Below, one piece after another: positions 9,995-49,729 of a DNA stretch of 52,279 nucleotides. The stretch spans positions 44,578,508 through 44,630,786 of the forward strand of contig NC_068987.1 in assembly GCF_001194135.2 (NCBI RefSeq), given 5' to 3'. Within the stretch, counting starts at the first letter, position 1; each line of letters starts with the position of its first letter. Under the pieces are notes generated by a model that searched no databases, was not told the origin of the DNA, and saw only the letters and a program-made list of their open reading frames with translations. Both the position numbers and the translations under genes were made by a program. Origin of the DNA: Octopus bimaculoides (Eukaryota).

Positions 9995-12176
9995 GCATGT
10001 GAATCAGCAGCTTGAAGTGTTTCAGTTTGCCAGACAGTGTGCCGGGGAATATTGTCATATGGTAGAGAAGTGTATTTGCATGGATGATGATTGACTTACA
10101 GTTAGTGACTCTACAAAGAAAGAGGCTTGTAAGTGCCATTATGAAAAGCTATTAAATGTAGAGAATTCATTGGAAGAGAGTCTGCCTAGTGTGGATTGAA
10201 CAGAGGGACCAGCAATATAAATAGACAGTAGTGTTTTAGATAAAGCCATGAAAATGGGGAAAGCTCGGCCCATGAGAAATAACTGCCGAAATGCTTAAAA
10301 TATCTGGTGTTGTGAGTTATCATCTAGTCACCTATATAGTTAATCAGGTGTTGCACGAAGGAGTCATACCAATGACTGGTGTAGTGGTACCACAGACTGC
10401 TACAAAGGTAAAGGTGATTCCTTAGATAGAAATAATTACCATGGTATCACATTGTGGGATGAAAGTCATGGAGAGGGTCATAGCCCAACTAATTAGAAGA
10501 GTGTTAGTTTAGATGAGATGCAGTTGGGTTTTGTGCCAGGGAGAAGCACCACTTATGCTATATTTCTGGAAAGACAGCTACAGCAGAAGTACCTAGCCAA
10601 AGATAAACTTCAGTACTTAGCTTTTGTTGACATGGAGAAAGCCTTTGACAGGGTACCCTGATCCCTTATCTGGTGGTCAATGTGGAAACCAGGGATAGAC
10701 AAGTGGTTGGTGAGAACTGTACAAGCCATGTACAGAGATAAAGTAAGAAAGATGAGGGCTGGCTATGAGTAAAGTGATGAATTCAAGGTATAAATAGGCG
10801 TTCATCCAGGCAATAACAGAGGAATTTAAGACAGGCTACCCCTAGGAGCTCCTCTATGCTGATGACCTTGCACTAATTGCTGAGTCACTATCAGAAGTAG
10901 ACAAGACATTTCAGGTGTGAAAGCAAGGTCTAGAATTGAAGGGCCTAGAGTCAACCTAGCAAAAACCAAAGTCTTAGTAAGAACGCAGACAAATCACAAA
11001 TCCCTTCAAGTAGATAGCCCTGCTCAATCTGTAGTAAAGGTGTAGGTAGAAATTCCATAAGATGTACCTGGTGTAAGCTATGGACGCATAAGAGGTGCAG
11101 CAATATCAGAGGTAGGTTAACTGGGAAAATAGTTTTTGTGTGTGGAAGGTGCAATAAACACTAAAACTGTACAGAATATTGATTTTTATCAAATGCCATT
11201 GGGGTAAGCTAGAGGTAGTGGATATTTTCCTTTATCTAGGTGACCAAGTCAGTAGCGGAAGTGGATGCTCTGAGAGTGTAGCTGCGAGAATAAGGATAAG
11301 CTAGGCAAAGTTCATGGAGCTCCTACCTCTGTTGGCAACAAAGGGCTTTAGTTAAAGGCAGGCTATTTGATGGCTGTGTGTGAACGGCTATGCTACAAGG
11401 CAGTGACACATGGGCTGTGACCATCAAGGACATGCATAGACTTGAGCAAAATGAAACCAGTATACTTTGCTGGATGTGCAATGTCAGTGTGCATGTACAA
11501 CAGAGTGTAAGTGTCTTGAGGGAAAAGTTGGACATAAGAGGCATCAGAGACAAGGACAGTTGTGTAAAGAAGTGCTGATTTCTAACAGTAGAGAGAACCT
11601 GTGGAAGAGATAGATCCACAAAGGCATGGAATGAAGTATGATCTTCGAACATTGGGCTTCACAGAGGCAATGACTTTTGACTGAGACCTTCAGCAATATG
11701 TTGTGCATGAGAAGACCTATCAAACCAAGTGAAATCATAGTCACGACTGCTGCTGGTGTCACATGACTGGCACGTAAAGACCACCTATTGAGCATTGGGC
11801 CTCACAGAAGCATTGTAGCTGATGCCAGTGTCAACTAACTAACACTTGTGACAGTGACATGTAAAAAGCACTTTCAAGTGGTAAGCCTCACGGAAGCAAT
11901 GATAAATGACTGAGACTTTCAGTGTGTTGTGCTTGAGAAATGGACCAACCAAGTCAAGTGAAATCGTAGTTGTAGATACTGGTGTTGCACAACTGGCACC
12001 CAAGCCAGTGGCACATGGAAACACCCATTACGCCCTCAAAGTGGTTGGCATTAGAAAGGGCATCCAGCTATAGAACCCATGCCAAATGAGACTGGTGTCT
12101 AGTGCATCCCCTCAACTTCCCAAACTGCCCAGCCCATGCCAGCATGGACAACAAATGTTAATTCATGATGATGATA
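9995..12176 (+). mobile_element. Degenerate 5'-truncated RTE-clade LINE (RT, Cys-rich insert, 3'UTR, (GAT)n tail)
   Basis: Homologous to the copy at 32635-35875; many stops and frameshifts. Confidence 0.85.
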
Positions 12177-12515
12177 ATGGGGGATTGAAAAGGCATGTCA
12201 AATTTCATGCTGTGGCACTTGTTCTCTCTCCCAGCCAGCACAGGTGTGCATTATGTAATAGAATGTGCAAATCTTTACCCAAACTTGAGTCAAGTGTCTC
12301 ACATTGCATCATCATCAACTCATTTCAATGATTTTAGCAATGGCTTTGCTTGTATATAAGAAAGCAGCTACTATGAATATCTATGAGGGTGTCTGTGTGT
12401 ATATATATATATGTGTGTGTGTGTATATGTATGCATATATATAAATGTATGTATGTATATGTGTATGTATACATGTATATATATATGTATGTATATATAT
12501 ATATGTGTGTGTGTA

Positions 12516-13355: not shown

Positions 13356-14230
13356 GTATGTATATATGTATGTGTATAGATGTGTATATGTATGTATATA
13401 TGTATGTGTATAGATGTATATATTTATGTATATGTATATGGATATATATATATTCATATAGATATATATACACATGTATGTATATATATATCTATATATA
13501 CATATATATGTATATATATGTACATATATATATATGTATATATATATATATGTATGTATATCTATATATACATATGTATGTATATATATATATATGTATG
13601 TATATCTATATATACATATGTANNNNNNNNNNNNNNNNNNNNNNNNNNNNNNNNNNNNNNNNNNNNNNNNNNNNNNNNNNNNNNNNNNNNNNNNNNNNNN
13701 NNNNNNNNNNNNNNNNNNNNNNNNNNNNNNNNNNNNNNNNNNNNNNNNNNNNNNNNNNNNNNNNNNNNNNNNNNNNNNNNNNNNNNNNNNNNNNNNNNNN
13801 NNNNNNNNNNNNNNNNNNNNNNNNNNNNNNNNNNNNNNNNNNNNNNNNNNNNNNNNNNNNNNNNNNNNNNNNNNNNNNNNNNNNNNNNNNNNNNNNNNNN
13901 NNNNNNNNNNNNNNNNNNNNNNNNNNNNNNNNNNNNNNNNNNNNNNNNNNNNNNNNNNNNNNNNNNNNNNNNNNNNNNNNNNNNNNNNNNNNNNNNNNNN
14001 NNNNNNNTATATATATATATATATATGTATATGTATGTATATATGTATGTGTATAGATGTATATATTTATGTATATGTATATGGATATATATATATTCAT
14101 ATAGATATATATACACATGTATGTATATATATATCTATATATACATATATATGTATATATATGTACATATATATATATGTATACATATTTGTCATCATCA
14201 TCATCATTTAACATATATATACATATATAT
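13290..14230. repeat. (TA/TG)n compound microsatellite spanning an assembly gap
   Basis: Dinucleotide runs; it produces the spurious YI-repeat ORFs. Other runs at 1-27, 645-675, 4292-4328, 9825-9985, 12395-12515, 15742-15830 and 31710-31953. Confidence 0.95.
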
Positions 14231-15740
14231 ATATCATCATCGGTTAACGTCCGCTTTCCATGCTAGCATGGGTTGGACAATTTGACTGAGGACTGACAAG
14301 CCAGAAGGCTGCACCAGACTCCAATCTGATCTGGCAGAGTTTCTACAGCTGGATGCCCTTCCTAACGCCAACCACTCTGAGTGTGTAGTGGGTGCTTTTA
14401 CGTGCCACCGGCACAAGGGCCAGTCACACGGTACTGGCAACAGCCATGCCCAAAAAGGTCTTTTCTGCATGCCACCTGCACGGAAGCCAGTCCAGCGGCA
14501 CTGGCAACGACCTTGCTCGAATGATTTTCTAACGTGCCACCAGCACAAGTGCTAGAAGGCAACGCTGATAACGATTACACTATAATGGTGCTATTTACGG
14601 GCCCCTAGCACGGAAGCCAGGCAGCTGCTCTGGCAATGAAGCACGCTCGACAGTGCTGTTAGTGTTCCACTGGCACGGTTACCAGTCATCGAGTATGGTT
14701 CAATTACGATTTCATTTGTCCAAACAGGTCTTCACAAGCAGAGTTTAGTGTCCAATGAAGAAGAGGTTGTCATGGGTGCCAGTCATTGGATTCAGTTCGA
14801 TTTCAAATTTCAAATTCACTTGCCTCAACAGGTCTTCGCAAGCAGGGTTTTAAGTGTCCAATGAAGTAAAGATACGGATTAGTGAGCTGGCTACACTTCT
14901 GGCAGAGAACACAGATTATGCTCTCACTTGCCTTGCCGGATCTTCTCACGTACTGCTTATTTCCAAAGGTCCCGGTCACTGGTCATTGCCTCGGTGAGGC
15001 CTAAAGTTCGAAGGTCGTGCTTCACTACCTCATCCAAGGTCTTCCTGGGTCTACCTCTTTCACAGGTTCCTTCAACTGCTAGGGTGTGGCACTTTTTCAC
15101 ACAGCTATCCTCATCCATTCTTGCCACATGTCCATATCAGTGCAATCGTCTCTCATCACCACAACTGATGCTTCTTAGGTCTAACTTTTCTCTCAAGGTA
15201 CTTACACTCTGTCAAATATGCACACTAACATTACACATCCATCGGAGCATACTGGCGTCGTTTCTTGCAGGCTTACACATGTCCTCAGCAGTCATGGCCC
15301 ATGTTTCACTGCCATGTAGCATGGCTGTTCGTACACATGCGTCATACAGTCTGCCTTTTACAATGAGTGAGAGGCCCTTTGTCACCAGTAGAGGTAAGAG
15401 CTCTCTAAACTTTGCCCAGGCTATTCTTATTCTAGCAGCTACACTTTCAGTGCAGCCTCCCCAGCTACAAACTTGGTCACCTAGGTAGCGGAAGCTATCA
15501 ACTACATCTAGTTTTTTTTCCCTGGAGTGTGGTAAAGATTGTTTTCTGCACATTCTCAGTGTTTATTGCTCCTGAACATCTGCCACATACAAAAACTATC
15601 TTCCTAGTTAACCTTCCTTTGATATTACTGCACCTCTTATGTGTCCATAGCTTACACTGGGTGCATGTTATGGAGTTTCTACCTATGCCTTTTCTACAGA
15701 TCAAGCAGGGCCATCTACCTGAAGGGGTTTCTGTTTTGTC
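14190..15740 (-). mobile_element. RTE-clade LINE 3' fragment with internally repetitive 3'UTR
   Basis: VVDSFRYLG...RIRIAWAKFRELLPLL...LYDACVRTAMLHGSETW; intact Cys4-His-Cys3 insert; (CAT)n tail at about 14190-14240. Confidence 0.9.
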
Positions 15741-18397: not shown

Positions 18398-18497
18398 NNN
18401 NNNNNNNNNNNNNNNNNNNNNNNNNNNNNNNNNNNNNNNNNNNNNNNNNNNNNNNNNNNNNNNNNNNNNNNNNNNNNNNNNNNNNNNNNNNNNNNNN

Positions 18498-19381: not shown

Positions 19382-19714
19382 TCATCATCATCATCATCAT
19401 CGTTTAATGTCCGTTTTCCATGCTAGCATGGGTTGGACGATTTGACTGAGGACTGGTGAACCAGATGGCTACACCAGACTCCAATCTGATTTGGCAGAGT
19501 TTCTACAGCTGGATGCCCTTCCTAATGCCAACCACTCCGAGAGTGTAGCGGGTGCTTTTACGTGCCACTTGCACGAAGGCCAGTCAGGCGGTACTGGCAA
19601 CAGCCACGCTCAAAATGGTGTATTTTACGTGCCACCTGCATAGGAGCCAGTCCAGCAGCACTGGCAACGATCTTGCTCGAATGTCTTTACACGTGCCACC
19701 TGCACAAGTGCCAG
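19382..19714 (-). mobile_element. Short RTE 3'-end copy with (CAT)n tail
   Basis: CATCATCGTTTAATGTCCGTTTTCCATGCTAGCATGGGTTGGAC. The same tail is at about 2830-3010, 3450-3630, 22600-22820, 25920-26050, 28260-28390 and 29150-29315. Confidence 0.8.
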
Positions 19715-20448
19715 NNNNNNNNNNNNNNNNNNNNNNNNNNNNNNNNNNNNNNNNNNNNNNNNNNNNNNNNNNNNNNNNNNNNNNNNNNNNNNNNNNNNNN
19801 NNNNTATGAATAATAATAATAAATGGAGCAAAACACATATAAATAAAAGGAACTTTTATTTATATGCGTTTTGCTCCATTTATTATTATTATTCATATCT
19901 TCTCAAAATGTATCACTTTAACTTGGTATCTCTACTTGTAAAACGGCTGTGATATCTTGGTTTCTAGTGTAATTTTGCTACCTCTGGTAACTATTAACAT
20001 ATTTACATTATCAAAGGTTTTTTTAAAACTGAGATAATATTAATATATACATAAACTAATATATATACTGTTTTCTCCCCCATTGTGCATATTAATCTCC
20101 ATTATGTCCTTCATGTTGTATCAACATTTCATGCATTTATTTAAGTTAAGGAAGTTATTAAAAGTTGAAACCCATCAGTGACTTTTGGGATGCACTGTTT
20201 ATACGTGTGTGTCTGGTCAAGCCAATGAAATATTTTCGTGTGTGTGTGTTTCTCCTTTACTACCACTTGACAACTGATTTTGGTTTGTTTACATCCTTAA
20301 CAGTTCCGGAAAAGAGACTAATAATTTAAATACCCAACTTTAAAAAACAAGTACTGGAGTTGAACTGTTTGTCTCAACCCTTCAAGGCTGTAACCCAGCA
20401 TGGCTGCAGTCCAGTGACTGAAACAAATAGAAGATATGTATGTGTATG

Positions 20449-23314: not shown

Positions 23315-24333
23315 GCACATTTATCATATCTTGATACTTTGTGGAATCCCTGTTGACAAGCCAATAATAAAGTGTTAAATAGTTATAGTATGCAAATTAA
23401 TAATTCCAGTTCTCAGAAGCTACTAGATTTGTTATGTATATAAACAGACTGACTGATTATTTCTATGGATTATGTCAAGTGATGAGACCCCAATGAAGTT
23501 GTTCATTACTTTTTCAATTTATGGAGTAGTAGTTAAATTTATCATCTTTTTATGTCTACTTTGTAAGTTTATATATATATATATGTTGTGGGGAGGTAAC
23601 TTCGTGCCAGGTGTTAAGATGATAAAGTATAAAGGCGAGATACATGGCTACCCCAGCAGGAATGGGAGAACATGATGGTGGAGCTGAAGTGTCCGGGCAT
23701 ATCCTCATGGTACAAGAAGGTGGATAAAGAGAGAATAGGAAGAATGATTCTAATTACATTCCCAGATGTCTAGATACCTATTTCCCGACATCCAACTGAC
23801 TCAAAACATGTTGAATTATGAAAAATAAAGTGTTTTGCTTTGAAACAACAAAAGATTTGTGATAGATTTGAAACCACAAACTGGGAGTTGGTAACTCAGT
23901 ACCTTATCTAATCAGCCATTTCACTTTGCTGTTGTTAACCCTTAAGCATTCAGATTACTCTGACAAATGTAATGGTTATTTATTCACATTGTTTTGAATT
24001 AATCATGCTTTATCTCAGTTTTAAGATTTTGGTGATGTGACTGTTTTATTCTTATACTGACATTGTAGGGTAGATTTGATCACTTTGAACATAAAACAAG
24101 TAGAATATTTTGGCTGGATATGACTAGTTTGAAAGCTAAAGGGTTAATGTAGTTATCAGAACTAGTTTTAGCATAATTTGACTAATTAAAACAAAGCCAA
24201 ATAATCTCTGTTTACAGATAACTGTCATTCTTTAGTCGAAAGAATTTTACACATATATTTCTCTGCTCTTCTTAAAATATTAAAAGTTGGAATGTTTTCT
24301 CATTTTTTACTCTTTTATACCTTACTATTTTAG

Positions 24334-24470
24334 ACCCTTCGAAAAGTTTTACTGATGACTCTCGACTCTCCCGGTTGATGCGACGTCTGCTCAAGGAGAG
24401 TGATAGAGACCGGCGTCTCAATGCTGCCAAACAGCTGAAAGATCATTTACATTCAACTGATGGAGTAAAA
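24334..24470 (+). CDS. SMG1: SMG1 exon 2 (DPSKSFTDDSRLSRLMRRLLKESDRDRRLNAAKQLKDHLHSTDGVK)
   Basis: TAG acceptor and GTAAGT donor; matches recalled human SMG1 SDESRLSNLLRRITREDDRDRRLATVKQLK. Confidence 0.95.
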
Positions 24471-26493
24471 GTAAGTTTAAATATTGTTTTATTTATATAT
24501 TTGTTTATTGTTTAGCCCCCATGAATTCCTCTTATTGAACAACACTATGATCAAAGATTCCACATTTTTTTGTCTTTTTACTTCTATCTAATGTCCTTCT
24601 TCCCTTTAAATCAGTAGGCTGTTATTTGAGATAGATTTTGTTAGTTTTAATTGGTTGAGTGTCAGTGTAGGGGGTTCTCTCTTTGGAGTTAAAGTTTAGT
24701 TTTTTTACGTAAATGATGGATGTCAGCATTTGCATATATGATAGTGATGGGGGGAGGGGGTTAAATTTTAGTTTCTCTTCCCCAACCATAGCAGTGGTAT
24801 TTATTTGTAGAATCATTTTCCCCTTGTCTTAATTGCACACCTGAGCTAAAATTTAAATGTCCATTTATGATCTCAGCAATTTATTGTGCAATTATGCATG
24901 AATGTAAAAACCATACACTTTAGTTAGACAAGATGTTTTCTAACTGCTTGCATATTGTTTGTATAAGGTTGCAAACTTGTTTCAAACCTGAAGCACAGGA
25001 AGTGCTATGTGTCACCTTGGGCAAGTGTCTTCTGCTGTAGTTAGTTCCAGGCTTGTGAGTGGATTTGGTAGATGGAAACTGAAAAATGCCCATCATTGTG
25101 TGTGTGCGTGTGTGTCTGTCCCCTTGTCTTGATATTGTTTGTCAGTCATTTCCAATGTTCAGCAAAAACATGACTGGCCAAGAGAAATATTACCTTGCTT
25201 AGAAACTGGTAAGGATTGATAACAGGAAAGCTATCTGGCTGTAGAAAATCTATATCTATAAGCTGTCTAACCCATGCAAGCATGGAAAAGTGAATGCTAA
25301 AGCAATGATGAAGATGAAATAGACACTAATTCAAGCCAACACTGCAAAATCTATTATGCTATTCTAAAGTCATGTCTCATCTTAAATTGTCCCATCTGAG
25401 TTGGATTAACTCAAATTCCACATGCACAGCCAATTTACCTGCATTCTGGTAGTGTTTTATTAGTCCAGCTTGTCAACTACTCAGAAATATTTGTACAATT
25501 GAGACTGATATGCATTGACTAAGTACACCATGTCTGTTTCTGCTTTAGTCTCCTGAAAGAGCTGTTATCATAGTCCTAGCCACCTGCAACACAAAAATGC
25601 AACAAATATTCACTGTCATGCTATACCACTACACCCAACCCTACTGACCATTATACAACAGTCTTCAGTGTTTTGTCCTTAGATTGATTGAAGTGTATCT
25701 TAGATGATGGACATGGGTTATTGTTTTGTCTAGCATAAACTGACTGGAATTGCCTAACGTTAACAGCAACAGTAACAAAGCCAATCCATTCTCAGGTAAT
25801 GGGAAACTGATATTCAGTTTGCAGTTTTTTTTTCTTTTTTTTTTCTGTGGATTACAGAATTTTCACATATCCAGTCCTTCACATACATATATAAACATAT
25901 GTAAAAAAAAATCTCATAGGAAGGGCATCCAGCTGTAGAAACTCTGCCAAATCAGATTGAAGCCTGGTGTAGCTACCTGGTCCATCAGTCCTCAGTCAAA
26001 TCATCCAACCCATGCTAGCATGGAAAGTGGACGTTAAACGATGATGATGATGATATATGAGTTGTTTTTTTGTTTTTTTTTTCCATTTGAAAAATCCCTC
26101 CTTTCTTTTCTGAAATGCTTTACCATAGTTTTGCCCATCTGCATATATTTTTCCTATTCTATTCAGGATGTAACAGAGGGCCAGGTAAGTTTAGAAGGAT
26201 TGCTAGTCAGTTTTTGTTTCTTTACTATACTAATTACAACAATTACTTAACATAGTTTGTTTTTCCTTTTTTGTATTCTCTCAACTTGCACTTGTTTGTT
26301 CACATGTTTTTCTTTGCTTTTTTTTTCTCTCTTCTACATACAAATGTGTATGCATGTGTGCACACACGGACACACGCATGCACAAATATAATCTTATCAG
26401 TTTAACCTTTTAGTATTCACTAGTTGATTACATTGGCCCCAGTACTTATTTCAGTTTGGTACTTATTTTTATCAGGCCACTAAGTTACAGGAC

Positions 26494-26525
<32 letters not shown>

Positions 26526-26759
26526 GCGAGAAAGGGTGAAACCTTGTTAAACTTGATATTACATAAACCAGATGAAATCTAAATTAAGAAAATGTCTATC
26601 AGTGTTGACTTTCCATGCTGTTTGTAGACTGGTTGAACTTGACACATTACTTTTGGTAGCTGGAAAGGGATTTGGCATATCTCAGTTGTATTCTTCTTAG
26701 TTACATCATTACATCACTTTCATATAAACACACTGAGTGCTCTATTTGTTGAACTTCAT

Positions 26760-27900
26760 ATCATGTACTTAGCATTCATTGACCTTGAGAAAGCCTTTGA
26801 CAAGATGACTTGGTCCCTCATCTGGTGGTCACTGTGAAAGCTAGGAGTAGATGAATGGCTAGTGAGAGCCATTCAAGCCATGTACAGAGATGTCTTTAGC
26901 AAAGTAAGAGTTAACAATAAGTACACTAGTGAATTCAATGTGCAGGTAGTTCATCAGGGTTCAGTTATCAGCCCCCTTTTATTTATCATAGTCCTCAAAG
27001 CCATATTGGAGGAACTTAAGACCAGTAGCTCATAGAAACACCTCTATGCTAATGACCTTGTTATAGCTGCAAGTGTAGAAGAATTAAAATTCCATATATG
27101 GAAGCACACCTAGACCCAAAGAGTCTTATGGTTAACTTAGCAAAAACTAAAGATCTAATTAGCAGGAAAACTGAATGAACACTAATCTTTTCAGGTAAAT
27201 GGTCCTGTTCTATATGTAGACAGGTGTAAGTAGAAATTCCATTCAGTGTGCTCAGTGCAAACTATTGACACATAAGTGGTGCTGTGGAATCAAAGGAAGG
27301 TTATCAGAAAAAGAATTTGTTTGTGACATATATGCAGGAGCAATAAATAAGAGCTCACTGGAAATAGATGTTCTGAAATACGCAGGAGGCTCCCTAAAAG
27401 TAGTAGATAGTTTCTGTTATCTAAGTGATGTAATTAGCAATGAAAGAAGATACTCTGAAAGTATAGTGCTAGAATACAAATTGGCTGGAGAAAGTTCAGA
27501 GATCTTGCATATCTGTTGGTAACAAAAGACCTCTCTGTCAGAAAGAAAGGCAGATTGTATGATGCCTCTGTACGAACAACAATACTACAGGACTGAAACT
27601 TGGGCTGTGAATGCAGAGGACATGTGGAGACTTGAAAGAAATGGAACACGTGTGCTCCAATGGATGTGCAATGTCAGTGTGCATGTACAGCAAAGCAGGG
27701 CATAGGAGGCATCAGAATTGGTGTGGAGGAGAGAAGATTGTGCTGGTATGGTCATGTGTTTTGGATGGATGAGGATAGCTGTGTAAAGAAGTACCGATTG
27801 CTAAACATGGAAGGAGCATGAGGAAGGGGTAGACTGATCTCAAGATGTGGAACCTCTTAGAGGAGATGACAGGGTACTGAGATGAAAGGCAGGTCTTCTC
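26760..27900 (+). mobile_element. Degenerate RTE RT fragment
   Basis: TACTTAGCATTCATTGACCTTGAGAAAGCCTTTGACA (FVDxEKAFD motif) and downstream similarity to the other RTE copies. Confidence 0.8.
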
Positions 27901-28734
27901 AAGCACAGCATAATGCCAATCTCAGTAGAATTGAGGCCCTGTCAAGCCTTCCTCCACAACTCCTCTTTTATTTCCTTCCCTTCCCCCTCTGCTGAACTGA
28001 TATCCTCTGCATCCAATTCATTCCCTATCTCTATTCATCTGTCACACTATTTTTACTCAGTGCACTTCCTATTCTCTCTCATATTCATGTTGTACCTGGA
28101 CCTCACATATCTTTCTTCCTCTCTCTTTTTCTCCTCACTTTCCAGGTGGGCAAGACATGTATTCACCTCTTCAGCAAGACACCTGCTCCTCTCTCAGTCT
28201 ATCATAGTTTCTGTCTCCAGTCTATACCCCACTCAATGGAGGGGTCTTATCTTGTGAGTCCTTGGTGACCTCACTAGGGCTGGTGCCACATAAAAGCACC
28301 CAATACATTCTGTTAAATGGTTGATGGCATCCAGCTGTAGAAACCATGCCAGCATGGAAAAAAGAACATTAAATGATGATGGTGATACATGATGGGCTTT
28401 CAGTTTCCATCCACCAAATTCACTTTGGTTGGCAAATAGAAGACATTTGATCAAGTACAATTCAAGTACTGCAGTCATTGTAATCAATTAAACCTTTTCA
28501 TTGGTTACTAAATGAGAAATAATTTCTACAAGATGAGCTGGTATATGATACTTTCACTTCAGACAAAATTCCTTCTGGTATTAAGTTAAAACCTTTAGTT
28601 TGGATACTGCTGAGTCATCTTTGCTTTTTGTCCTTCATGTGTTTATAATGTAAGCAGTGGTCATATACCGCTGTCAAACTGTCTTTACACCTACCAGAAG
28701 TTGCCTTGTGCTTATGTTAAATTATTATTGTAAA

Positions 28735-29615
28735 GCAGTGAGCTGGCAAAATCATTAGCACGCTGGGCAAAGTGCTTGGTGGCATTTTGTCTGTCTTTAC
28801 ATGCTGAGTTCAAATTTTGCCAGGGTCAACTTCATTGACCCTGAAAGGGTCAATAAATTAAATACCAATTGTGTACTGGGGTTGATATAATTGACTAGCC
28901 CCTCCAAAATTTGTGCTTTTATTAAAAAAAGGAGTATTTTTATTATTAAGAAGGCAAGAATCATCCACATACTGGACAAAATCTTGATATTTCATCTGGC
29001 TTTATGATCTGAGTTCAAATGATGCTGAGGTCAACTTTGACATTTGTCCTTTCAGAGTTGATAAAATAAGTACCAGCTGAGCACTGAGATGGATGTAATC
29101 AATTTCTCCCTCCCCATACAATCTCGGGCCTTGTGCTTGGCACATAATAAGCACCCGATGCACTCTGTAAAGTGGTTGGCATTAGGAAGAGCATCCAACT
29201 GTTGAAACCATGCCACAACAGACAACTGGAGTCTGGACAGCTCTCCAGCTGGCTGGCTCCTATCAAACAGTCCAACCCATGCCAGCATGGAAAACGTTAG
29301 ACGATGATGATGATTAAGATAGTAAGCTGGCAGAATCATTAGCATGTCAGACAAAATGCTGAGAGACTTTATTTTGAGATCTTTATGTTCCGGTTTCAAA
29401 TTGTATTGAGGTTAGCTTTCAAGATCAATAAAATACAGTACCAGTGAAGCACTGGCACCAGTGTAATCACTTCCCCAAATTTCCCAGGTGAAATGCTTAG
29501 CGGTATTTTGTCCGTCATTTTCACGTTGTGAATTCAAATTCTACTGAGATCGACTATATCTTTCGTAATCAACTATCCCACTCCTCCAAAATTCAGGCCT
29601 TGTACCTATATTAAA

Positions 29616-29651
<36 letters not shown>

Positions 29652-30101
29652 GGTGGCAGAATTGTTAGCATGCTGGACAAAATGCTTTGCGGTATTTTGC
29701 TACATTTTGAGTTCAAATTTCACCAAGGTCTCCTTCAACCTTTCATCCTTTCGGGGTTGTAAATTAAGTACCAGTGAATCACTAGGGTTGATGTAATCGA
29801 CTAGTCCTCTCTCCTCAAATTTCAGACCTTGTACCTATATTAAAATGGATTATTATTATTATTAAGGGGGCGAGCTGGCAGAATTGTTAGCATATTGGAC
29901 AAAATGCTTAGTGGCATTTCTTCCAGATGTTTACAGTCTGTTATAGTTCTGTCAAAGACAGCTTTGGTTTTCATTCTTCCACAGTCAATAAAATAAGTTG
30001 AACAGTGGGGTCAAATGTAATCTATCCCTCTTCCCCCAAATTTCAGACATTGTGCCTATAGTAGAAAGGACATTTATTATTAAATATTATTATTATTATT
30101 A
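28735..30101 (+). mobile_element. Cluster of about six tRNA-headed SINE copies, head-to-tail with (ATT)n tails, interrupted by an RTE-tail fragment
   Basis: Repeated head GAGCTGGCAGAAT(C/T)GTTAGC...GAGTTCAAAT near 28740, 28950, 29322, 29485, 29650 and 29865. Confidence 0.8.
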
Positions 30102-31916
30102 TTGGAGGTACAGTGTAGTTGTTAGTCTAAGGTGATCAGAAGCTATGTACATGTAAATAAATTGCAACCTGATCTCAGTCATTGAGTCCTGCTTGGAAGG
30201 TGTATTATTCTATTTCATGGTAGAGTGATTTATGATAATAGCAATATTGTAAATCCATCGGTTCTAATGATTTATACAAATGGCCTAATTTGTAAAATAG
30301 TGTCTTAACTAGCATGATGAAAGGCATTTCAATATTTTTTCATAGATAAATTTTGCTTTTCATCATTCTGATGTCTACTAGAAAATACAACTTTTGTGTC
30401 AGTTTGACTTAAGTCGCCAAAATCCTATCTCCACATTTTGTACTAGTGGAGAGAGACCAATTTTTTTTCCTCCCTTTTGATAATTTACGATAATTAACTT
30501 GCACCAAGATAAGCACTGACGTAGCTGTGTAAAGAAGCTTGCTTCCTGACCATGTCTTGTGTTCAGTCTCTTTATATGGCACCATGGGCAACTGGCTTTT
30601 ACTATAGCCCTGAACCAACCAATACCTTGTGAGCAGATTTTGTTGATGGAAAATGTCTCCATAATGCCACAAGATGTCTTAAAACTGCTGATCTTGGATA
30701 AAACTCAAACATATTGCACTTTTAAACTTCATCCACAACACCTGGGTTCTCTTTCTTTGTAGCCAGATATTTCAGTACTGCTTTCTCTGATTAAGTTGTT
30801 TTCTAAAGTGTCCTGCTTTCTGTCTTCACCACAGGGCATTATAATTTGTTAACTTTTCGGGGAACAAAAGGCAATTGGTGTTTTAGAATGTCCTAGAAAT
30901 GTGTTTGGTTTGAGCTTTTTATGGAAACTTGAAATAATACTACTATAGTATATCCTGTTTGTATACAGCATATACTAAAATAGTTGTTTGTATTGCATGT
31001 ATTGGTGTTGGTGTGAGCTTGTAATCGTATGCATACATAATGTGTTTGTATGTCACTTGTAGTAAAACTGAGAGCAACATAAACTAAACCGCAAATGTCC
31101 TTTTAGAAAACCAGCTGGTACAGCGAACATATAACTTGTTTCATAGAAAAGTAGCAGATTTGATATCTCACTCTGCATGTTTGGTTCAACAAGCATTACT
31201 TGAACACCCTTACTCACCCACCACCACCACACACATCTTTGTATCTTTATGGACTTCCACTTTCCTTTCTAAATTTTCCGACATTGACTACACTTCACCT
31301 CCTCTTCCCATGCCTTTTAGTTGTAGCTTTATAAGAAAGTGAGTGTCTCCTCTTACTACTACTACTACTACTACCACTTTTAATAGCTTTTTGTTTGGTG
31401 TTTCTTACTTATACAAAAGACATAAATCTGTTAGGATATACAGACTGTATTTATGCAGAGAAGATAAACTTTTTGCAAAGTGAGTGCATGACCTTGTTTT
31501 GATGTGTTGGTTGTAATTATTCTTACTTCCACTTCACATATTGTCAATGTCCTTTGAAGGTGCATGAGTGTCACAAATATTTTCTCCTCTTGGGTGACAA
31601 TAATTAAGCTAATCACACAAGAATGAATTATTGCTGATTGCAAAGAAGTTTGCACAGAAAATACAAACATTTCAATCATGCCTTTATTTCCCAGGTGTGA
31701 GCTTATGAAGTGTGTGTGTGTGTGTGTGTGTGTGTGAATATATATTTATGTATGTTTATATGTGTGTGTGTGTATACACTATATATTTGTTTATAACTAT
31801 ATGCATATATGTGTGTGTGTGTGTGTGTGTGCATGTATGAATGTATACACATTATATATGTTCATAAGTATATACATGTGTGTGTTTGTGCGCGCGCACA
31901 CGCACGCACACACACG

Positions 31917-31956
<40 letters not shown>

Positions 31957-32634
31957 TATCAAGGTGAAAACTAGTTCTCATCTGATACTGAAACCTAACT
32001 GCTATAAGCATTTCTTATTGGTGCAGGTGTGTCTTCTCAACTACAGGGATTTGGATTCAGTCTCACTGCATGGCACTTTGAGCAAGTGTCTTTTATTATA
32101 GCTCTGGGCCAATCAGATCCTTAAGAGGGAGTTTGATAGATGGGAACTGGGTGCAACACTATGACACTGAAGACCTATTCAGTACCCTTAATGTTTGTGC
32201 TTAACTCCATGTTACATTAGATGTAATCATCTGTACTTATGTTATACAGATTTGTGGCTGTGTATGTTAACACAATTCATTGGAATCTGGTTGTCTGAAT
32301 TCTGTGAGGATGGGAATATTTCAGAGTTGAGGGATGGCATATGTTTGTGTATGTTGATATGATTAACCTGGATTGGTTTGCTATATACATCAGGCATCAG
32401 CTCTGTGAGAAGAGCCAAGATCTATTTTCATGGTTGTAGACATGAGAGAGAGAGATGGTTGATTTTGGTTTACGGCAGAAGATTTCCGTTGAGGAAATAT
32501 AGATTAAAGAGTTCTTTCCTAGAAACACCATGCAACAGATTTGAATTCAATCACAATAGATCAATATCTTATGCTCATTAGCCATCTTGCCTCTGGTTTC
32601 ATTATTTTTATTTAGTTTTTATTTTAATGCTGCA

Positions 32635-35600
32635 ACCTTTTTCTTGGCTTACACCCCTCAGCCCGGGCTACCTGATGAACAGAAAGACTGATTTTATGAC
32701 ACCCTCTTGCAGACTACCTTGTCGACAAATAGACAGGGACCTTCTCTTTGTGGCTGGCAACTTCAATGGGTATGCTGGACAACATGCAGGGTTTTCCATG
32801 GCGTACATGGAGGCTATGGTTTTGGTTCCTGCAATGAGGAGGGAACCAAGCTGCTGGAGTTCTGCAATACAAATGATCTTATGGTTTGCAATACTAACTT
32901 CAGGAAACCTGCCAGCCACCTATTCACCTACTGATCTGGTGGACACACTAGTCAAATTGACTACATCCTTGCCAGGAAACCAGAAAGATGGCTACTTATA
33001 AATACCAAAACCTTCCCAGTTGAAGAATGTACCCCACAACTTAGATTAGTAGTTAGCGACTTCAGGATCAGGACTAAATGGATACCCAGAAGACGACCAG
33101 CATAGAGAAGAAGGGTCTGGAAGCTTAAAGATCCTGCGAATAGACAGAGATTTAGAGACATATTACTCAAAGCGTTTGATGAAATAGAACGGGATAAAGC
33201 ATCACATGATGTGGAAGACAGCTGCAGGTTCCTACTGGACAACCTGATTTGTGGATGGTGCAAAGTCCCCTCTCAACCCAGGATAACGTGGTGGTGAAAC
33301 AATGTAGTTGACAAGGCCATTAATGAAAAAAAACAGGCATGGAAGGACTGGAAGAACGGTGGTAGCAGGGAGTTATATCAGATTGCCAGAAGGGAAGCTA
33401 GAAGACATGTTTACTTAGCCAGAAGGGAAGCATATAAGAAAAAATTTGCCATTGTTCTGTGTTGTGAGGACCAAAGGCTTGAAGTGTTTCATGTTGCAAG
33501 ACAGTGTGTGAGAGAAAATCATGATGTCATAGGAGAGAAATGTGTTCGCATGGATGATGGTTCACTTGCATTTAATGAGGCTGCAAAGAAAGAGGTTTCG
33601 AGACGCCACTACGAAAGGTTGCTCAATAAAGAGAATGAATGGGAGAAAGAGTCTGCCGAATGTCGACCTAACAGAGGGACCAGCTATCTGAGTTGACAGT
33701 ACCATGATAGATAAAGCAATTAAGAGTATGAAGACAGGGGAAGCCCCCGGCCCATCAGGAATCACCGTAGAGATGCTTAAAATATCTGGTGGTGTCAGCT
33801 ATAGTTTAGTCACCTGTATAGTCAATCAGGTGATACATAAAGGAGTCGTAACCAATGACTGGTGTATTAGCACCATAGTCGACTGCTAAAAAGGTAAAGG
33901 TGATGCATTAAATACAAATAATTACAGAGGTATCAAGCTGTTGGATCAGGTAATGAAAGTCACAGAGAAGGTCATAGCCCAACTAATTAGCAAGATCATC
34001 AGTATACAGAAGCTCCCAGGAGCAACCTGTCTTGAATTCCTCTGTTATTGCCTGGAGGACTATGATGAATAAGTTAGTTTAGACAAGATGCAGTTTAGGT
34101 TTGTGCTAGGGAAAAGCACCACTGATGCTATATTTGTGGTAAGACAGTTGCAGGAGAAATACCTAGCCAAAGATAAACGTCTGTACTTGGCTTTTGTTGA
34201 CATGGAGAAAGCCTTTGACAGGGCTCCCCAATCCCTTATCTGGTGGTCAATGAGGAAACTAGGGATAGAAGAATGGTTAGTGAGAGCTGTACAAGCCATG
34301 TACAGGGATGCGGTCAGTAAGTTGAGGGTTGACAACAAGTATAGTGAAGAATTCCGAGTAGGGGTCAACCAAGAATCAGTCCTCAGCCCCCTCTTATTCA
34401 TCATAGTCCTCCAGGCAATAACAGAGGAATTCAAGACAGGATGCTCCTGGGAGCTTCTCTATACTGATGACTTTGCTCTAATAGCTGAGTCACTATCAGA
34501 ACTAGAGGTGAAGTTTCGGGTGTGGAAGCAAGATGTAGAATCAAAGGGCCTTACGGTTAACCTAGCAAAAACCAAAATCTTTTAAGTAGGAGGGCAGACA
34601 AATAACAAATCCCTTCAGGTAGATGGCCCTGCTTGATCTGTAGAAAAGGCTTAAGTAGAAACTCCATAATATGTGCCCAGTGTAAGCTATGGACACATAA
34701 GGGGTGCAGCAATATCAAAGGAAGGCTAACAGTGTTTATTGCTCAGGGGCAATAAACACTGAAAATGTGCAGAAAACCGCTTCCATCACATGCCAGGGAG
34801 AGAAACTAGAAGTAGTTGATAGCTTCCGTTACCTAGGTGACCAAGACAGTATCGGGGGTGGATGCTCTGAGAGTGTAGCTGCTAGAATAAGAATAGCCTG
34901 GGCAAAGTTCAGAGAGCTCCTACCTCTGCTGGTGACAAAGGGCCTCTTGCTCAGAGTAAAAGTTAGACTATATAACACATGTGTGTGAACAGCCATGCTA
35001 CATGGCAGTGAAGCATGGGCCATGACTGCTGAGGACATGTGTAAGCTTGCAAGGAATGAAGCTAGTTTGCTCTGCTGCATGTGTAATGTCAGAGTGCATA
35101 CACAATAGAGTGTAAGCGTCCTAAGAGAAAAGTTGAACATAAGAAGCATCAGATGTGTGTGCAAGAGAGATGACTGCGCTGGTATGGTCATGTATTGCAC
35201 GTGGATGAGGACAGCTGTGTGAAAAAGTGTCATACCCTAGCAGTAGAGGGAACCTTTGGAAGAGGTAGACTCAGGAAGACCTGAGATGAGCTGATGAAGT
35301 ACGACCTTCGAACATTGGGCCTCATCAAGGTGATGACAAGTGACCGAGACCTTTGGAGATATGATTTGCTTGAGAAAACCCGGCAAGCCAAGTGAGACCG
35401 TGACCGTGGCCTATGCCAATACAGCACAACCAGCCCATTTAAGAGTACCCTTCAATCATCGGACAATAAACTGCGCTTGCGAAGACCTTTTGAGGCAAGT
35501 GAAATTGTTGTTGTGGCCGATGCCAGTGCTGCCTTACTAACTCCCATGCCAGTGACACGTAAAAAGCATAATTCAAGCGTGGTCAATGCTAGTGCTGCCT

Positions 35601-35875
35601 GACTGGCTCCAGTGCCAGTGGCACATAAAAGGCACCATTCAAGCGTCGTTGATGCCAGTACTGCCTGACTGGCACTCGTGCCAGTAGCACATAAAAAGCA
35701 CCCACTACACTCTTGGAGGAGTTGGCATTAGGAAGGGCATCCAGCTGTAGAAACTTTACCAGAGCGGATTGGAGCTTGCTGCAGTCTTCTGGCTTGCCAG
35801 CCCTTAGTCAAACCATCCAACCCATGCCAGCATGGAAAGCAGATATTAAATGACGATTAGGATGATGATGATGAC
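32635..35875 (+). mobile_element. Longest RTE-clade LINE copy (APE EN, RT, Cys-rich insert, repetitive 3'UTR, (GAT)n tail), inactivated
   Basis: VAGNFNG...NEEGTKLLEFC...QIDYIL; FVDMEKAFDR; LSPLLFII; LLYTDD; in-frame stops and frameshifts. Confidence 0.93.
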
Positions 35876-37704
35876 CATTGGGAAGCTAATGAAATACTTT
35901 TCAGTTGTACAGTATTCTCACCACTAGCAGTAAAAGCCTGTACCTATATATATATATATGCATACACTTTTGAACATAATATTGAGGACAGCTTTTTGTT
36001 TTACAATTCAGTTGACTACAATTGGCTGAAACAGTCAATAGCTCTTATTTGCAATATTTTCTGGCAGAAAAATCTGTTTTGTTACCTTAGTCAGAGCTTC
36101 AGCTATAACTTGAAAAGATCCGGTGGAAATTAAGAGGGTTTTCGTAGTGGAAGTGCAGGTATAAGTGGATTTGGAACCTGAATATTTTCTGATGCATTCA
36201 TCTAATAATGATAAACTTGGTTAGCTAGGATTCTCTAAGGGTTGTTGGTGTAGGTTCCATATCAGGATACAAATTGCTCTGTCAGATTCAAAACTAGCTT
36301 TGCTATTTCATCACCATACATCTTGAGGAAAACATAGCCCAACATGTATTGTCAGTATTTTTTCTAGAACTTTCTGTTTTTTAATTCAGTGTTTATTATA
36401 GAAGTATTGGATTAGCTAAATATCTGATATTGCTTCTTTTGAAAAGTGCTGTACTTCTGAACTGACACTGCAGGCAAATAAAATAGTGTTGCTGTTGCTT
36501 ATTGCAATAAGCTGTATTGCATAGTATGTACTTGTTAGGTGGAATGTGCTATTGGACATAGTGTAATGACTGTTATTATACAAAACTGCCAAATGTTTGA
36601 GTTGGTTGAGTATCCTATCAACTTGGTTTGTTTTGGATATTGCCTTCCTATTAATTCCAATTAATATCTCTCAGAATGTGTAGGATAAAAGAATGATTTC
36701 ATTTCCTTATTTATGTAGAGAAAAGCTAACCAATCTTATGACTTTACCATTTGAAGTTCATATAGTTTGTGCTAGCTAACCAGTGACCTGGTTGAGCATG
36801 AGGAAATGTAAAATTTGTCTCAACAGTAACAAAGTATTGTTAGTCCTTTTCTTACTGTATTTCTCTTGAAATACAATGCCTTTATTTCAATTAATTTTGA
36901 ACATAATGGAGAGTTTAGTTAAAGTAATTGGTGTTTGGAACTTAAATTAACATGAAATTGTGATGGAGGGTTTAAAACTTAGATCATTTTATTACTTTTG
37001 TTACTATATTTCTGTTGAAAATACCCTTCATTTGTTTCAATAAATTTCAAATATAGTAAAGAATTTAATCAAATAACTAATTGTTTTTTTAAATAATGAA
37101 GACTAGTAAAATAATTTTGTCATTATTAAGCTGATGCTTGTGACATTAATTAACATGAAGTTTTGATGTAACATTTTAATTTAGATCACTTTAACTCATT
37201 TATTACCACATTTCTGTTGAAACACCCCGCATTTGTTTCAATTAATTTTGAAAATAATGAATTTAGTAAAATAACTTTATTTTGCTAAATAACGACTTTA
37301 TTTTACTTAATAACTTTGTAGTTATTAAGCTAGTGTTTGAAACATAATTGTGCTGAATTCAAATCCCAGAGAGGTTAACTTGGTCTTTCATATTTTTGGG
37401 TCAATAGGTTCTAGTTGAACATTAGAGTGGATTGTAATTGACTTCCCCCTCCCCTTAAAAGTGCTAGCCTTGAATTATTATTGTGATTGTGGTGGTAGCA
37501 GTGGTGTTGGGAGAGGAGGAAGGTTGGCAGAATCGTTAGAGCATGAGACAAAATACTTCATGATATTTGTTCTAGCTCTTTACATTCTGTGTTCAAATCT
37601 TGGAGAGGGGCCAGATTTGCCTTTCATTCTTCCAGGGTTAATAAAAAAAACTATACCAGTCAAGTACAGGGGTCAGTATAATCAGCTAACCACATCCTGA
37701 TAAA

Positions 37705-37900
37705 ATTATTATTAAGGTGGTGAACTGGCAGAACCATTCACAAAAGGCTTAGTTGCATTTCTTTTGTCTTTACATTTCGAGTTCAAATTCTGCCAAGGTT
37801 GACTTTACCTTTCATCATTTCGTGATCAATACAATAAGTACCAGAGTTGATGTAATCAACTGCTGACTCCATGTCAAAATTTGAAAGCATTATTATTATT
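37705..37900 (+). mobile_element. tRNA-headed SINE
   Basis: GGTGGTGAACTGGCAGAA head, (ATT)n tail; another copy at about 37500-37700. Confidence 0.75.
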
Positions 37901-37904
37901 GCTA

Positions 37905-39440
37905 TCTATCTATAATACATTAAAAGTGAGCTTGAATCTTCCTTGCTTGCAATGTTACCCAGCCAAACTGGTGCATAATGGGAAAATACTATGAATTAAA
38001 ATAGCAAGTAATAAAATCTCAAGAAGAGATAGTAATAATGTATACTAAACAGTAAAGCGAGTAGCTACATCAAAGTAGTAGTTGAATATTACTACTAGTT
38101 TAACCCCAGGGGGATTCTCTACCAGCTGGTTTTCGGTGTAAGCTCTGCACCCTTTATATACAATCCATTGCTAGCAGGGTAGGGGGTGAACTCCAACTAC
38201 TCTTCAGCAGCTAACAGTAAATGTTTCTATTTCCGCTTTTGTTAAACACAATATTTTAATCATTTAGAAATATTTTTAAGTGAATGTAATTTCAAAAATG
38301 TAAGTTGTTTGTGCAGTAAGTATCTATATTTTAGCTTTCTTTAAACAGACAATATTTTTATGTTTTTTAAAATTATTTTCAAGTGAATACTGTTACAAAA
38401 ATTTTTTTTGACATATTTTATAAAAGACTTATTTGTAACCTCGGTGTGAAATAATTTTTTTCCATAAGTCTTTTTGAGTGCATTCAACATATTTCACCTC
38501 CAAAGATTTGACTGTTATTTCTAGCATGCCCTACTACCATGTAACAGCTATTTGCAATAAAGGGCCTGAAATACCTGTTACGTGGTAGCGGGGCATCCAA
38601 GAAATAGCAGCCAAATCTTTCCTTTTCTGAGGAAAGGAGCCGGTTAAGCTTGATTTCAATATCACATTCGTTGAAAGCATCTGAAATAACCTGGAAAAGA
38701 AAAAAAGCCCACGAAACAAAACTCCATTGCTGGGAAACTCACACTTACTGGTCATCCAATGGGTCACAGGTAGTCTAGTAATACATTAAAAGTGAAGTTC
38801 TGTCTTGCTTGCTTGCAATGTTACACAGCCAAACTGGCACATAATGGGAAAATACTTTGAAAGTAAAGTGCCCCTGGAATGTGAATACGAATGGAATGAA
38901 ACAAGTTTTGCATAAATTGGACCAGTAGTTATTGAGATATTCATAGTTTTGGGGTATAAATACCCAAAACGGTGTATAATGGGGAAAGTACTCCGAAAAT
39001 AAAACCCTGAAAGGGAAGAAACGCTAAACTTTCCATTAAACACATTATTATTTTTAAGGGAAAATGACTTTAAAAATACGGTAAATATTTCATAAAGGAC
39101 CCATTTGTAACCTCAATGTGAAATAGTTTCTTTTCTATAGGTTTCTTTCAAGTGCATTCAACGTATCTTGTGTCCAAAGATTTGGTTGCTATGCCACCAC
39201 ATAACAGCTATTTGCGATAAAGAACCCGAAATACCTGTTACGTGGTAGCAGGGCATGCAAGAAATAGCAGCCAAATCTTTCCTTTTCTTGGGAAAGGAGC
39301 CATTTACATGTGATTTCAATGTCACATTCGTTGAAAGCATGCAAAATAACATGGAAAAGAAAAAAAAACCCATGAAGCAAAACTCTGTTGCTGGGAAACT
39401 CAGACTTCCCCAGTGACCCAATGGGTCACTGGTAGTTTAG
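37905..39440 (+). mobile_element. Head-to-tail dimer of a non-autonomous Helitron-like element
   Basis: 5' TCTATCTATAATACATTAAAAGTG; unit 1 ends with hairpin + CTAG (38775-38778); unit 2 restarts TAATACATTAAAAGTG and ends with perfect hairpin CAGTGACCC-AAT-GGGTCACTG (39411-39431) + TTAG; units share about 350 bp. Confidence 0.75.
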
Positions 39441-39442
39441 TT

Positions 39443-39670
39443 ATCATTATTATTTTTAAATATTCTTTTCTACTCTAGGCAGAAGGCCTGAAATTTGGTG
39501 GGGGGCTAGTCAATTAGATCGACTCCAGTATGCAACTGTACTTAATTTATTGACCCCGAAAGGATGAAAGGCAAAGTTAACTTCAGTGGAATTTGAACTC
39601 AGAACGTAAAGACGAAACACCACTAAGCATTTTGCCTGACATGCTAACGATTCTGCCAGCTCACCACCTT
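39443..39670 (-). mobile_element. tRNA-headed SINE
   Basis: Reverse complement head at 39650-39670, with the ATT-rich tail at 39443-39455. Confidence 0.8.
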
Positions 39671-39875
39671 AAAGAAGTTGAAGTCAAAGGTTCTTATTTC
39701 CTAAGGGTAATGGACTGGCAAAATCAATAGAGTTGCATATAAAATGTCTAACCCTGAGGTTGAATTTACATGTCATTGTTCTTGGGGTTAATCTTCTTAA
39801 CTGTTCCCTCCCTACATATTTTTGGTTTTGTTGCTACCTAAGAAATTATTCATTTATTTTTCTCTGTATTTGCAG

Positions 39876-39934
39876 GTTGCTGCAAAAGTAACTGAAGAGT
39901 TACTTGCTGCACTTCAAGAACTTTTTTATGAAAG
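39876..39934 (+). CDS. SMG1: SMG1 exon 3 (VAAKVTEELLAALQELFYER)
   Basis: TTGCAG acceptor, AAG|GTAATT donor, phase 0 to 2; aligns to LVKQLDNILAAVHDVLNE. Confidence 0.88.
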
Positions 39935-40878
39935 GTAATTATTACATCACAGTTTATTTCTTGTAGCATTTTTTTCCTTTGTGTTTGTACTTAGCTGAAT
40001 GACTGAACACATGAACATTACATTAATATCTTAATATAACCATTGTTATGTTCTCTTGAACAAGAAAAGTAAACTACTTAGCGCAACCTGCATGACTCTG
40101 GATTGGTTCCACTTTTATTTTGTGGGTGAGTGATGAGTCAACAAACAGTAAGATGCTGATCCTAAAATGTAAAATGTCTACATTTGCAAATGCCGTCACA
40201 CTCATCTTAAATTGAACAAATAGATATAAAAGAGTTGAAAATGCAATTGTACACACTCAATGATTTATGTATTCATTTTTGATATGTTCTGGCAGCTTCA
40301 AATGTGAATATATGATTGTTGTTGTTTGTTCATAACACACATGATTCACTAGTGTAAGAAGACTTTTAGATGCTGTGGTGTTTCAACTTTATTGTGTCTC
40401 CTCAGTCAAAGCTATTCCATGAGACCTACACATCTAGCAAGAACACAAACTTTTGTTTATAGGAATTAGCATGTATGTTATTTGCTAATATATATACCAA
40501 ACAGATAATAATCCATGTGGTGCATGCAACGCATCAAGAATCTAAACAATAACATACCTATTTATTCTTAAATGTTCTGGTAAATTTGGATATGAATATC
40601 TAATCTCTGCTGTTTGTTCTTTGTCAAAGAATGCCTCCTCTCCTTAGATGTTATGTGTTCATAACGTGCACATTTCAATGGTTGAAGGGAATTTTGAGAC
40701 ACCACAGTGTTGACTTTGTTTCTCCTTAGTCAATTGTATACATAGTTTTATTATACATATAATGAATTAATGTGGTTAGTAAACAAATTTTCAGCAAGGG
40801 ACTTGTTTGAATTGCTTTTGTCTCTTTGGGATTCCCATAATTCACCATATGCTCTACTGATGATAGTTTACAAATATT

Positions 40879-43341: not shown

Positions 43342-43419
43342 AATCTATAAAGAAATAAAGTATGAGGTTGCTTTATGTATTGGAACAGTAGGCAGTATAA
43401 TGGGACCAAATGCTGATAG
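43342..43419 (+). CDS. SMG1: SMG1 exon 4 (IYKEIKYEVALCIGTVGSIMGPNADR)
   Basis: CTGTAG acceptor, GTAAGT donor, phase 2 to 2; aligns to LQELRQEGACCLGLLCASLSYEAEK. Confidence 0.9.
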
Positions 43420-43762: not shown

Positions 43763-43844
43763 ATATTTCCAATGGTTGTTTGCCCAAACCAACAGTGCCA
43801 CAGATGATGACATCAGGCAGCTGTTTCTTCTAGCATTACTTGAG
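43763..43844 (+). CDS. SMG1: SMG1 exon 5 (YFQWLFAQTNSATDDDIRQLFLLALLE)
   Basis: TTGCAG acceptor, GAG|GTAAGT donor, phase 2 to 0; aligns to IFKWIFSKFSSSAKDEVKLLYL. Confidence 0.92.
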
Positions 43845-46162: not shown

Positions 46163-46210
46163 ACTTTGAAATGTGATGAGAAGAAGCAAACATTAGCTGA
46201 TTTCATGCAG
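46163..46210 (+). CDS. SMG1: SMG1 exon 6 (TLKCDEKKQTLADFMQ)
   Basis: Polypyrimidine tract + TACAG acceptor, CAG|GTAAC donor, phase 0 to 0; aligns to ALETVGEKKAFSSVMQ. Confidence 0.88.
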
Positions 46211-48393: not shown

Positions 48394-48519
48394 AATGTAA
48401 TGGCTAATGTGCAGACATTGTTGGAAAATGCTGACAGTGCTGAGATTCTCATTGCTGTTGTCAACATAATCCAGCAGCTTTCAAAGGTCTACCCCCATGT
48501 GTTCAACTCTCACTTTAGG
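48394..48519 (+). CDS. SMG1: SMG1 exon 7 (NVMANVQTLLENADSAEILIAVVNIIQQLSKVYPHVFNSHFR)
   Basis: Canonical splice sites; aligns to LQSILENVDTPELL...YPHIFSTNFR. Confidence 0.95.

Positions 48520-49387: not shown

Positions 49388-49729
<342 letters not shown>

Follow-up and report, generated by a model that had tools for sequence, protein, structure and literature searches.

A candidate 18-nucleotide in-frame microexon in intron 2 of SMG1 from Octopus bimaculoides

Mutagenesis of microexons dependent on SRRM3 and SRRM4 has associated this class with a long distance between branch point and acceptor AG and with a strong 5' splice site; about 75-79% of these exons have a UGC within the interval from branch point to AG, and the typical vertebrate order is branch point, pyrimidine tract, UGC and AG (bioRxiv 10.1101/2024.09.17.613571). 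The subject here is an 18-nucleotide (nt) candidate for a cassette microexon in Octopus bimaculoides, found in a stretch of contig NC_068987.1 of 52,279 nt, which is referred to at its full length as the window. The candidate is situated on the sense strand, 1.7 kb into the 15.4-kb intron 2 of SMG1. We give a probability of roughly one half to its being a genuine, lineage-specific cassette microexon of this gene; that such an exon would be regulated in neurons is rather unlikely.

Several features of the candidate recall the neural microexons of bilaterians that are controlled by SRRM3 and SRRM4 (through the eMIC domain of Srrm234). Its 18 nt fall in the class of 3-27 nt, it is in frame, and its 5' splice site is very strong; its putative branch point (-45, counted from the first base of the exon) stands at a long distance from the AG, with UGCs between the two. 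The model discussed below suggests that its polar and charged residues would enter a surface linker beside a structured repeat, as is also the case in that class. It is set apart in that the 3' splice site is strong instead of weak, and the typical order of branch point, pyrimidine tract, UGC and AG is not the one found here.

The identity of the host gene follows from the flanking exons, whose similarity to SMG1 is significant and collinear. Exons 2-9, once spliced, match residues 140-430 of human SMG1 (E = 1.2e-72), and the joined translation of exons 2 and 3 (PSKSFTDDSRLSRLMRRLLKESDRDRRLNAAKQLKDHLHSTDGVK/VAAKVTEELLAALQELFYE, a slash marking the splice junction here and below) aligns without a gap to human residues 140-201 (6l53_A; E = 6.8e-9). 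When the candidate is added to exons 2-9, the residues DVTEGQ stand opposite a six-residue gap in the human protein that falls exactly at the exon 2/3 junction. Exon 2 has the boundaries tttag/ACCCTTCG...GGAGTAAAA/gtaagt, its 3' end reading GGA GTA AAA/gtaagt, and exon 3 has the boundaries tttgcag/GTTGCTGCA...GAAAG/gtaatt, opening with cag/GTT GCT GCA; since exon 2 ends with a complete codon and exon 3 begins at a codon start, an insert of 18 nt preserves the frame.

The insert itself is a multiple of three in length, free of stop codons and open in phase 0/0 of the flanking junction. The local sequence is ATTTTTCCTATTCTATTCAG/GATGTAACAGAGGGCCAG/GTAAGTTTAG, in which GATGTAACAGAGGGCCAG corresponds exactly to 26167-26184, is bounded on its 5' side by tttttcctattctattcag/ and on its 3' side by /gtaagt, and as an 18-mer has a single occurrence in the window. 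Inclusion corresponds to the junction ...GGAGTAAAA-GATGTAACAGAGGGCCAG-GTTGCTGCA..., with the predicted peptide ...STDGVKDVTEGQVAAKV... across it, and skipping to GGAGTAAAA/GTTGCTGCA. The 18 nt have a G+C content of 0.56 and their flanks one of 0.26-0.29, a contrast in the same direction as that seen for the real exons, although the consensus bases themselves account for part of the excess. An earlier note on this DNA had proposed the exon at these coordinates, within SMG1, at a phase-0 junction with exons 2 and 3 and lacking a stop, and was correct to the base; its further statements, that exons 2 and 3 match human SMG1 in the absence of the insert, that a strong acceptor is paired with a perfect CAG/GTAAGT donor, and that a UGC about 27 nt upstream (26140-26142) and a TGCATG at 26351 are present, all hold on the evidence given above and in what follows.

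The splice sites of the candidate are exceptionally strong. All AG..GT pairs 3-51 nt apart were scanned on both strands, giving about 18,000 pairs; donors were scored with a generic metazoan weight matrix, the values of which are approximate consensus frequencies, and acceptors by pyrimidine content, the bases at -3 and +1, and a penalty for any upstream AG. With 6.6 bits for the acceptor and 12.6 bits for the donor, the candidate (19.2 bits) ranks first among all pairs on both strands, and it stands above all eight verified SMG1 exons (6.1-18.6 bits). The runner-up on the + strand, at 17.5 bits, is the true 48-nt exon 6 of SMG1, so the score has discriminating power; no verified exon has a stronger acceptor than exon 6 (10.3 bits), which serves as an internal positive control for the scan. 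The best decoys reach 16.4 bits on either strand, which leaves the candidate 2.8 bits higher in about 100 kb of strand.

Each site is also rare when taken individually. An acceptor score as high is attained by only 15 of the 3295 AG dinucleotides on the + strand. The sequence CAGGTAAGT is found on this strand once only, at the candidate donor, and the shorter AGGTAAGT six times: at three verified SMG1 donors, at two chance sites (3633 and 45643) and at the candidate, with two further chance sites on the - strand. In Markov simulations of order 1 and order 3, pairs of at least 19.2 bits arise at 0.015-0.02 per 52-kb strand, and those that are in addition a multiple of three and stop-free at 0.0025-0.005. 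Real decoys are about 1.5-3 times commoner than simulated ones at thresholds of 14-16 bits, and we take about 0.01 per window as a fair chance rate, which is unusual for a single window.

Were the candidate used by the spliceosome between exons 2 and 3, it would insert Asp-Val-Thr-Glu-Gly-Gln into the short linker, variable among orthologues, that connects two HEAT-type helices near the N-terminus, at about K183/L184 of human SMG1, and leave the rest of the kinase unchanged. Skipping would be the default, because 18 nt are too short for cross-exon definition, and inclusion would require an activator. Srrm234/eMIC is the candidate for this part: bound to the UGCs that lie between putative branch point and AG, and perhaps aided by Rbfox on the UGCAUG downstream, it would stabilize early spliceosome assembly. 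In its fullest form, the proposal is of a neural microexon specific to cephalopods that Srrm234/eMIC, perhaps together with Rbfox, would turn on and that would give neurons an SMG1 isoform of their own; this we consider unlikely.

The position of the insert can be viewed in an AlphaFold2 model of an invertebrate orthologue (P0002; mean predicted local distance difference test score 82.7). There the junction (PENS/KTIL) falls in a short helix, residues 24-32, with block means of 74-76, which joins two longer HEAT-type helices of higher confidence (7-21 and 34-48). The placement "between helical repeats" in the earlier note is thus approximately correct, the junction being within a short helix of lower confidence that links two HEAT-type helices. 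This connector, which stands at the extreme N-terminus of the HEAT solenoid, would become longer by six polar or acidic residues. Three SMG1 entries in the PDB begin to match the query at residue 130 (6z3r) or 176 (7pw4, 6syt), which suggests that several of the models from cryo-electron microscopy define this outermost N-terminal stretch poorly.

Around the candidate there are sequence motifs that are weakly compatible with control by eMIC or Rbfox. The TTTAC at -45 is the only match to YTNAY in the 110 nt upstream; an AG at 26127-26128 (-40) follows 5 nt past it, too near its A for use, and there is otherwise no AG before the 3' splice site. Two of the three UGCs, at -35 and -27, lie between this putative branch point and the acceptor. 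Downstream, a second GCATG (26376) follows the TGCATG after about 25 nt, giving the arrangement a likeness to Rbfox-activated cassette exons, which have a usually conserved (U)GCAUG close by in the downstream intron; unlike in these, both are contained in TG/CA-rich low-complexity sequence (gtgtatgcatgtgtgcacacacggacacacgcatgcac), where the hexamer arises easily. As background on the + strand, at least three TGC in 55 nt occur at a frequency of 0.047, at least two in the interval -40..-4 at 0.09, and a TGCATG within 200 nt downstream at 0.09 of positions; the joint background is 0.007 for the + strand, 0.002 for the - strand.

Two of the UGC motifs are touched by a possible pairing. The sequence GCCCAUCUG (26133-26141), covering part of the UGC at -35 and extending into the one at -27, can form 8 bp, interrupted by one bulge, with CAGAGGGC (26174-26181), which belongs to the candidate exon; the pairing is present in both the minimum free energy and the centroid folds and would loop out the 3' splice site, in a region whose fold has a z of 0.35. 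By that measure, shuffled sequences fold as well as the 151 nt around the candidate, and there is no Rfam family at threshold in 24000-40500; on these two grounds, an explanation by a non-coding RNA or structured element is unsupported.

The question of whether the insert is found in other animals was addressed in a collection of 5.8 billion proteins. A peptide joining exon 2, the microexon and exon 3 had a single match, P0001, which is a genomic read-through open reading frame (ORF) of exon 2 from another cephalopod; its source (L001) is a 1.8-kb Logan genomic contig in which exon 2 has boundaries identical to those described here, and which aligns to the window in exon 2 only, at 77% nucleotide identity. 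The spliced N-terminus of 298 amino acids (aa) retrieved 62 SMG1 fragments, none longer than 520 aa and the best at 53-61% identity, with no cephalopod SMG1 and no full-length SMG1 among them; the named matches are SMG1 or SMG1-like, save for two uncharacterized proteins. The 69-aa ORF spanning the candidate returned nothing in an exact look-up. A 665-aa query of concatenated, X-joined intronic ORFs had no match at E<=1, a negative that is not trustworthy, since this composite missed even P0001, which the exon 2 segment alone matches at E 1e-15. A literature search gave no paper linking SMG1 with a microexon at this site, and SMG1 goes unmentioned in the single paper that has data on splicing in octopus.

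Among the orthologues, the closest (P0004, 61% identity) is encoded on contig L002 (ENA ERZ27229307 k141_67414; 1-153), which is spliced through about 410 codons. This contig opens in an intron, ...tttattatag/, directly before the equivalent of exon 3 (AASKVGDDILNSLQDVYFER), with about 110 nt upstream, and judging by its sequence is either a partly processed transcript that retains the 3' end of intron 2 or one with an internal start.

A number of these observations, and some further ones, weigh against a microexon. The insert is absent from every junction-spanning orthologue fragment that was aligned, and these include primates, salmonids, pufferfish, the coral Orbicella, the annelid Ridgeia and two invertebrate sequences (P0002 and P0019); the exon, if real, is therefore lineage-specific and not ancestral. 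Known neural microexons are typically deeply conserved. There is no exon resembling DVTEGQ in the roughly 1.5 kb of intron 2 contained in the cephalopod contig L001, an intron sequence that is partial and could not be aligned to that of O. bimaculoides. The candidate is situated in an island of about 580 nt (26059-26640) that is flanked by a SINE (short interspersed nuclear element) and a fragment of a LINE (long interspersed nuclear element). The motif enrichment is mild and the motifs were chosen after the fact, making this weak evidence, and the UGCs are upstream of the proximal pyrimidine tract (-19..-3), not between tract and AG as in the SRRM3/SRRM4 class; an upstream tract (-72..-56) would fit the typical order only with the AG at -40 ignored. 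Finally, in a genome of 2-3 Gb, the sense strand of the introns would hold a few hundred chance pairs this strong, by our estimate comparable in number to the true microexons that score so high; with chance and true cases of the same order genome-wide, splice-site strength alone puts the odds near even or slightly against.

The most serious competitor is accordingly a chance pseudo-exon, a good acceptor and a perfect donor that happen to stand 18 nt apart in an AT-rich 15.4-kb intron and that are spliced never or at most as occasional noise, since recognition of an exon of 18 nt would call for dedicated enhancers; we hold this to be a substantial possibility, somewhat short of an even chance. 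The candidate does resemble intronic pseudo-exons in being deep in a long intron rich in transposable elements and in having no homologue in the orthologous proteins. The chance occurrences of AGGTAAGT on both strands, the decoys of up to 16.4 bits with a real tail about 1.5-3 times heavier than the simulated one, and a rate of 0.01 per window that grows to hundreds in a whole-genome scan are all as expected for a site of this origin. What speaks for the cassette microexon instead is that, unlike such pseudo-exons, the candidate outscores every verified exon and every other decoy in the window, that it is in frame, stop-free and richer in G+C than its flanks, that it belongs to no repeat seen in the window (by self-comparison its island at 26059-26640 has no second copy there), no Rfam family and no unusual RNA fold, that the linker it would enter is of lower model confidence and varies among orthologues, and that it is accompanied by UGC and UGCAUG motifs whose joint background is 0.2-0.7%.

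It is improbable that the candidate is a constitutive exon, by which the linker of SMG1 in this lineage would always be six residues longer than in other animals. Constitutive microexons exist, and no constitutive exon nearby has splice sites as strong as the ones here; the linker also varies in length and sequence among orthologues, P0002 having three extra residues a few positions downstream. Exons so short, however, are rarely recognised without tissue-specific help (bioRxiv 10.1101/2024.09.17.613571). In addition, exons 2 and 3 join seamlessly, as shown by the gapless alignment to human SMG1.

A role as a splicing aid, that is, as a recursive or decoy site for the 15.4-kb intron that does not persist in the mRNA, is very improbable: a long intron, a location 1.7 kb from its 5' end and a strong acceptor closely trailed by a strong donor are all reminiscent of recursive splice sites and RS-exons, but recursive splicing depends on a new 5' splice site arising where the acceptor is joined (AG/GTRAGT), whereas the candidate reads CAG/GATGTA and the end of exon 2 joined to its start AAA/GATGTA, with no GT after the acceptor AG, which rules out classical recursive splicing and means that the 18 nt, once joined, would stay in the mRNA.

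SMG1 phosphorylates UPF1 and thereby commits mRNAs to nonsense-mediated decay, and cephalopod nervous systems lean heavily on post-transcriptional diversification. If the cassette microexon were real and tissue-specific, one cell type, for example neurons, could tune its mRNA surveillance through an SMG1 isoform, and a neural microexon would connect the programme of microexons without intermediary to the surveillance of alternatively spliced mRNAs. On present evidence it is a well-formed candidate only, and even if real it would be one more lineage-specific insert of six residues, placed in a linker that varies and that is distant from the kinase domain. Gene models derived from homology to vertebrate proteins will miss exons of this kind, and the practical value of the present one is that its two junction sequences allow a precise and cheap test by RNA-seq.

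Table 1. Features of the window discussed in the text, in order of position.
Feature	Positions	Strand	Remarks
Probable coding exon 1, Ser-rich N-terminus	6465..6998	+	Reading frame and phase only; start codon not fixed
SMG1 coding exon 2	24334..24470	+	Ends in phase 0; upstream flank; homology to human SMG1
SINE copy	25917..26058	+	Self-comparison; 108 nt upstream of candidate; at least 8 copies in window, both strands
Three UGC motifs	26116-18, 26132-34, 26140-42	+	At -51, -35 and -27
YTNAY branch-point-like motif TTTAC	26119..26123	+	A at 26122 (-45); putative, motif only
3' splice site	26148..26166	+	Pyrimidine-rich tract TTTTTCCTATTCTATTC, then AG; acceptor score 6.6
Candidate cassette microexon	26167..26184	+	GAT GTA ACA GAG GGC CAG = DVTEGQ, phase 0/0
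5' splice site CAG/GTAAGT	26182..26190	+	9/9 consensus match
TGCATG (Rbfox-type hexamer)	26351..26356	+	167 nt downstream of donor
Reverse-transcriptase (LINE-type) fragment	26643..27032	+	Pfam RVT_1, E 4.4e-10; about 460 nt downstream of candidate
SMG1 coding exon 3	39876..39934	+	59 nt, starts in phase 0; downstream flank
SMG1 exon 4	43342-43419	+	Human SMG1 alignment
SMG1 exon 5	43763-43844	+	Human SMG1 alignment
SMG1 exon 6	46163-46210	+	Human SMG1 alignment
SMG1 exon 7	48394-48519	+	Human SMG1 alignment
SMG1 exon 8	49388-49558	+	Human SMG1 alignment
SMG1 exon 9	50632-50808	+	Human SMG1 alignment

Exons 4-9 of SMG1 were used to calibrate the splice scores; one of them, exon 6, measures no more than 48 nt (TLKCDEKKQTLADFMQ; human counterpart ALETVGEKKAFSSVMQ). 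The 5' end of the coding region is less clearly defined: a Ser-rich frame ends with GCAG/gtaaca at 6998 in the phase that exon 2 needs, and is therefore probably coding exon 1. It contains a run of Ser codons (TCG/TCA repeat) at 6780-6815, and the low-complexity N-terminus that it would encode has no alignable counterpart among the orthologue fragments.

Mobile elements are found throughout the window. The SINE-like repeat is about 140 nt long with a (GAT)n tail, its copies being 68-93% identical and present in both orientations, and its consensus looks like that of the common octopus SINE. Beyond the copy next to the candidate, there are others at 19387-19524 (-), 51945-52088 (-), 14225-14364 (-), 35729-35866 (+), 29183-29314, 2876-3017 and 12052-12178, and the chance occurrence of AGGTAAGT at 3633 is supplied by a degenerate copy. 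The reverse-transcriptase fragment belongs to a decayed LINE-type retrotransposon in intron 2 (26643-27800, +) in which the reverse-transcriptase frames are broken; related copies are found at 34182-34411 and 10613-10739. Intron 3 contains a remnant of a pogo/Tigger-like DNA transposon (42031-42484, +) with a match to the CENP-B N-terminal DNA-binding domain (E 1.2e-9) and a sub-threshold one to the Tc5 helix-turn-helix domain. Four runs of N, totalling 1154 bases (4329-4907, 13623-14007, 18398-18497 and 19715-19804), vary in size and point to a scaffolded short-read assembly; all are in intron 1 or upstream of it, and intron 2 is unaffected.

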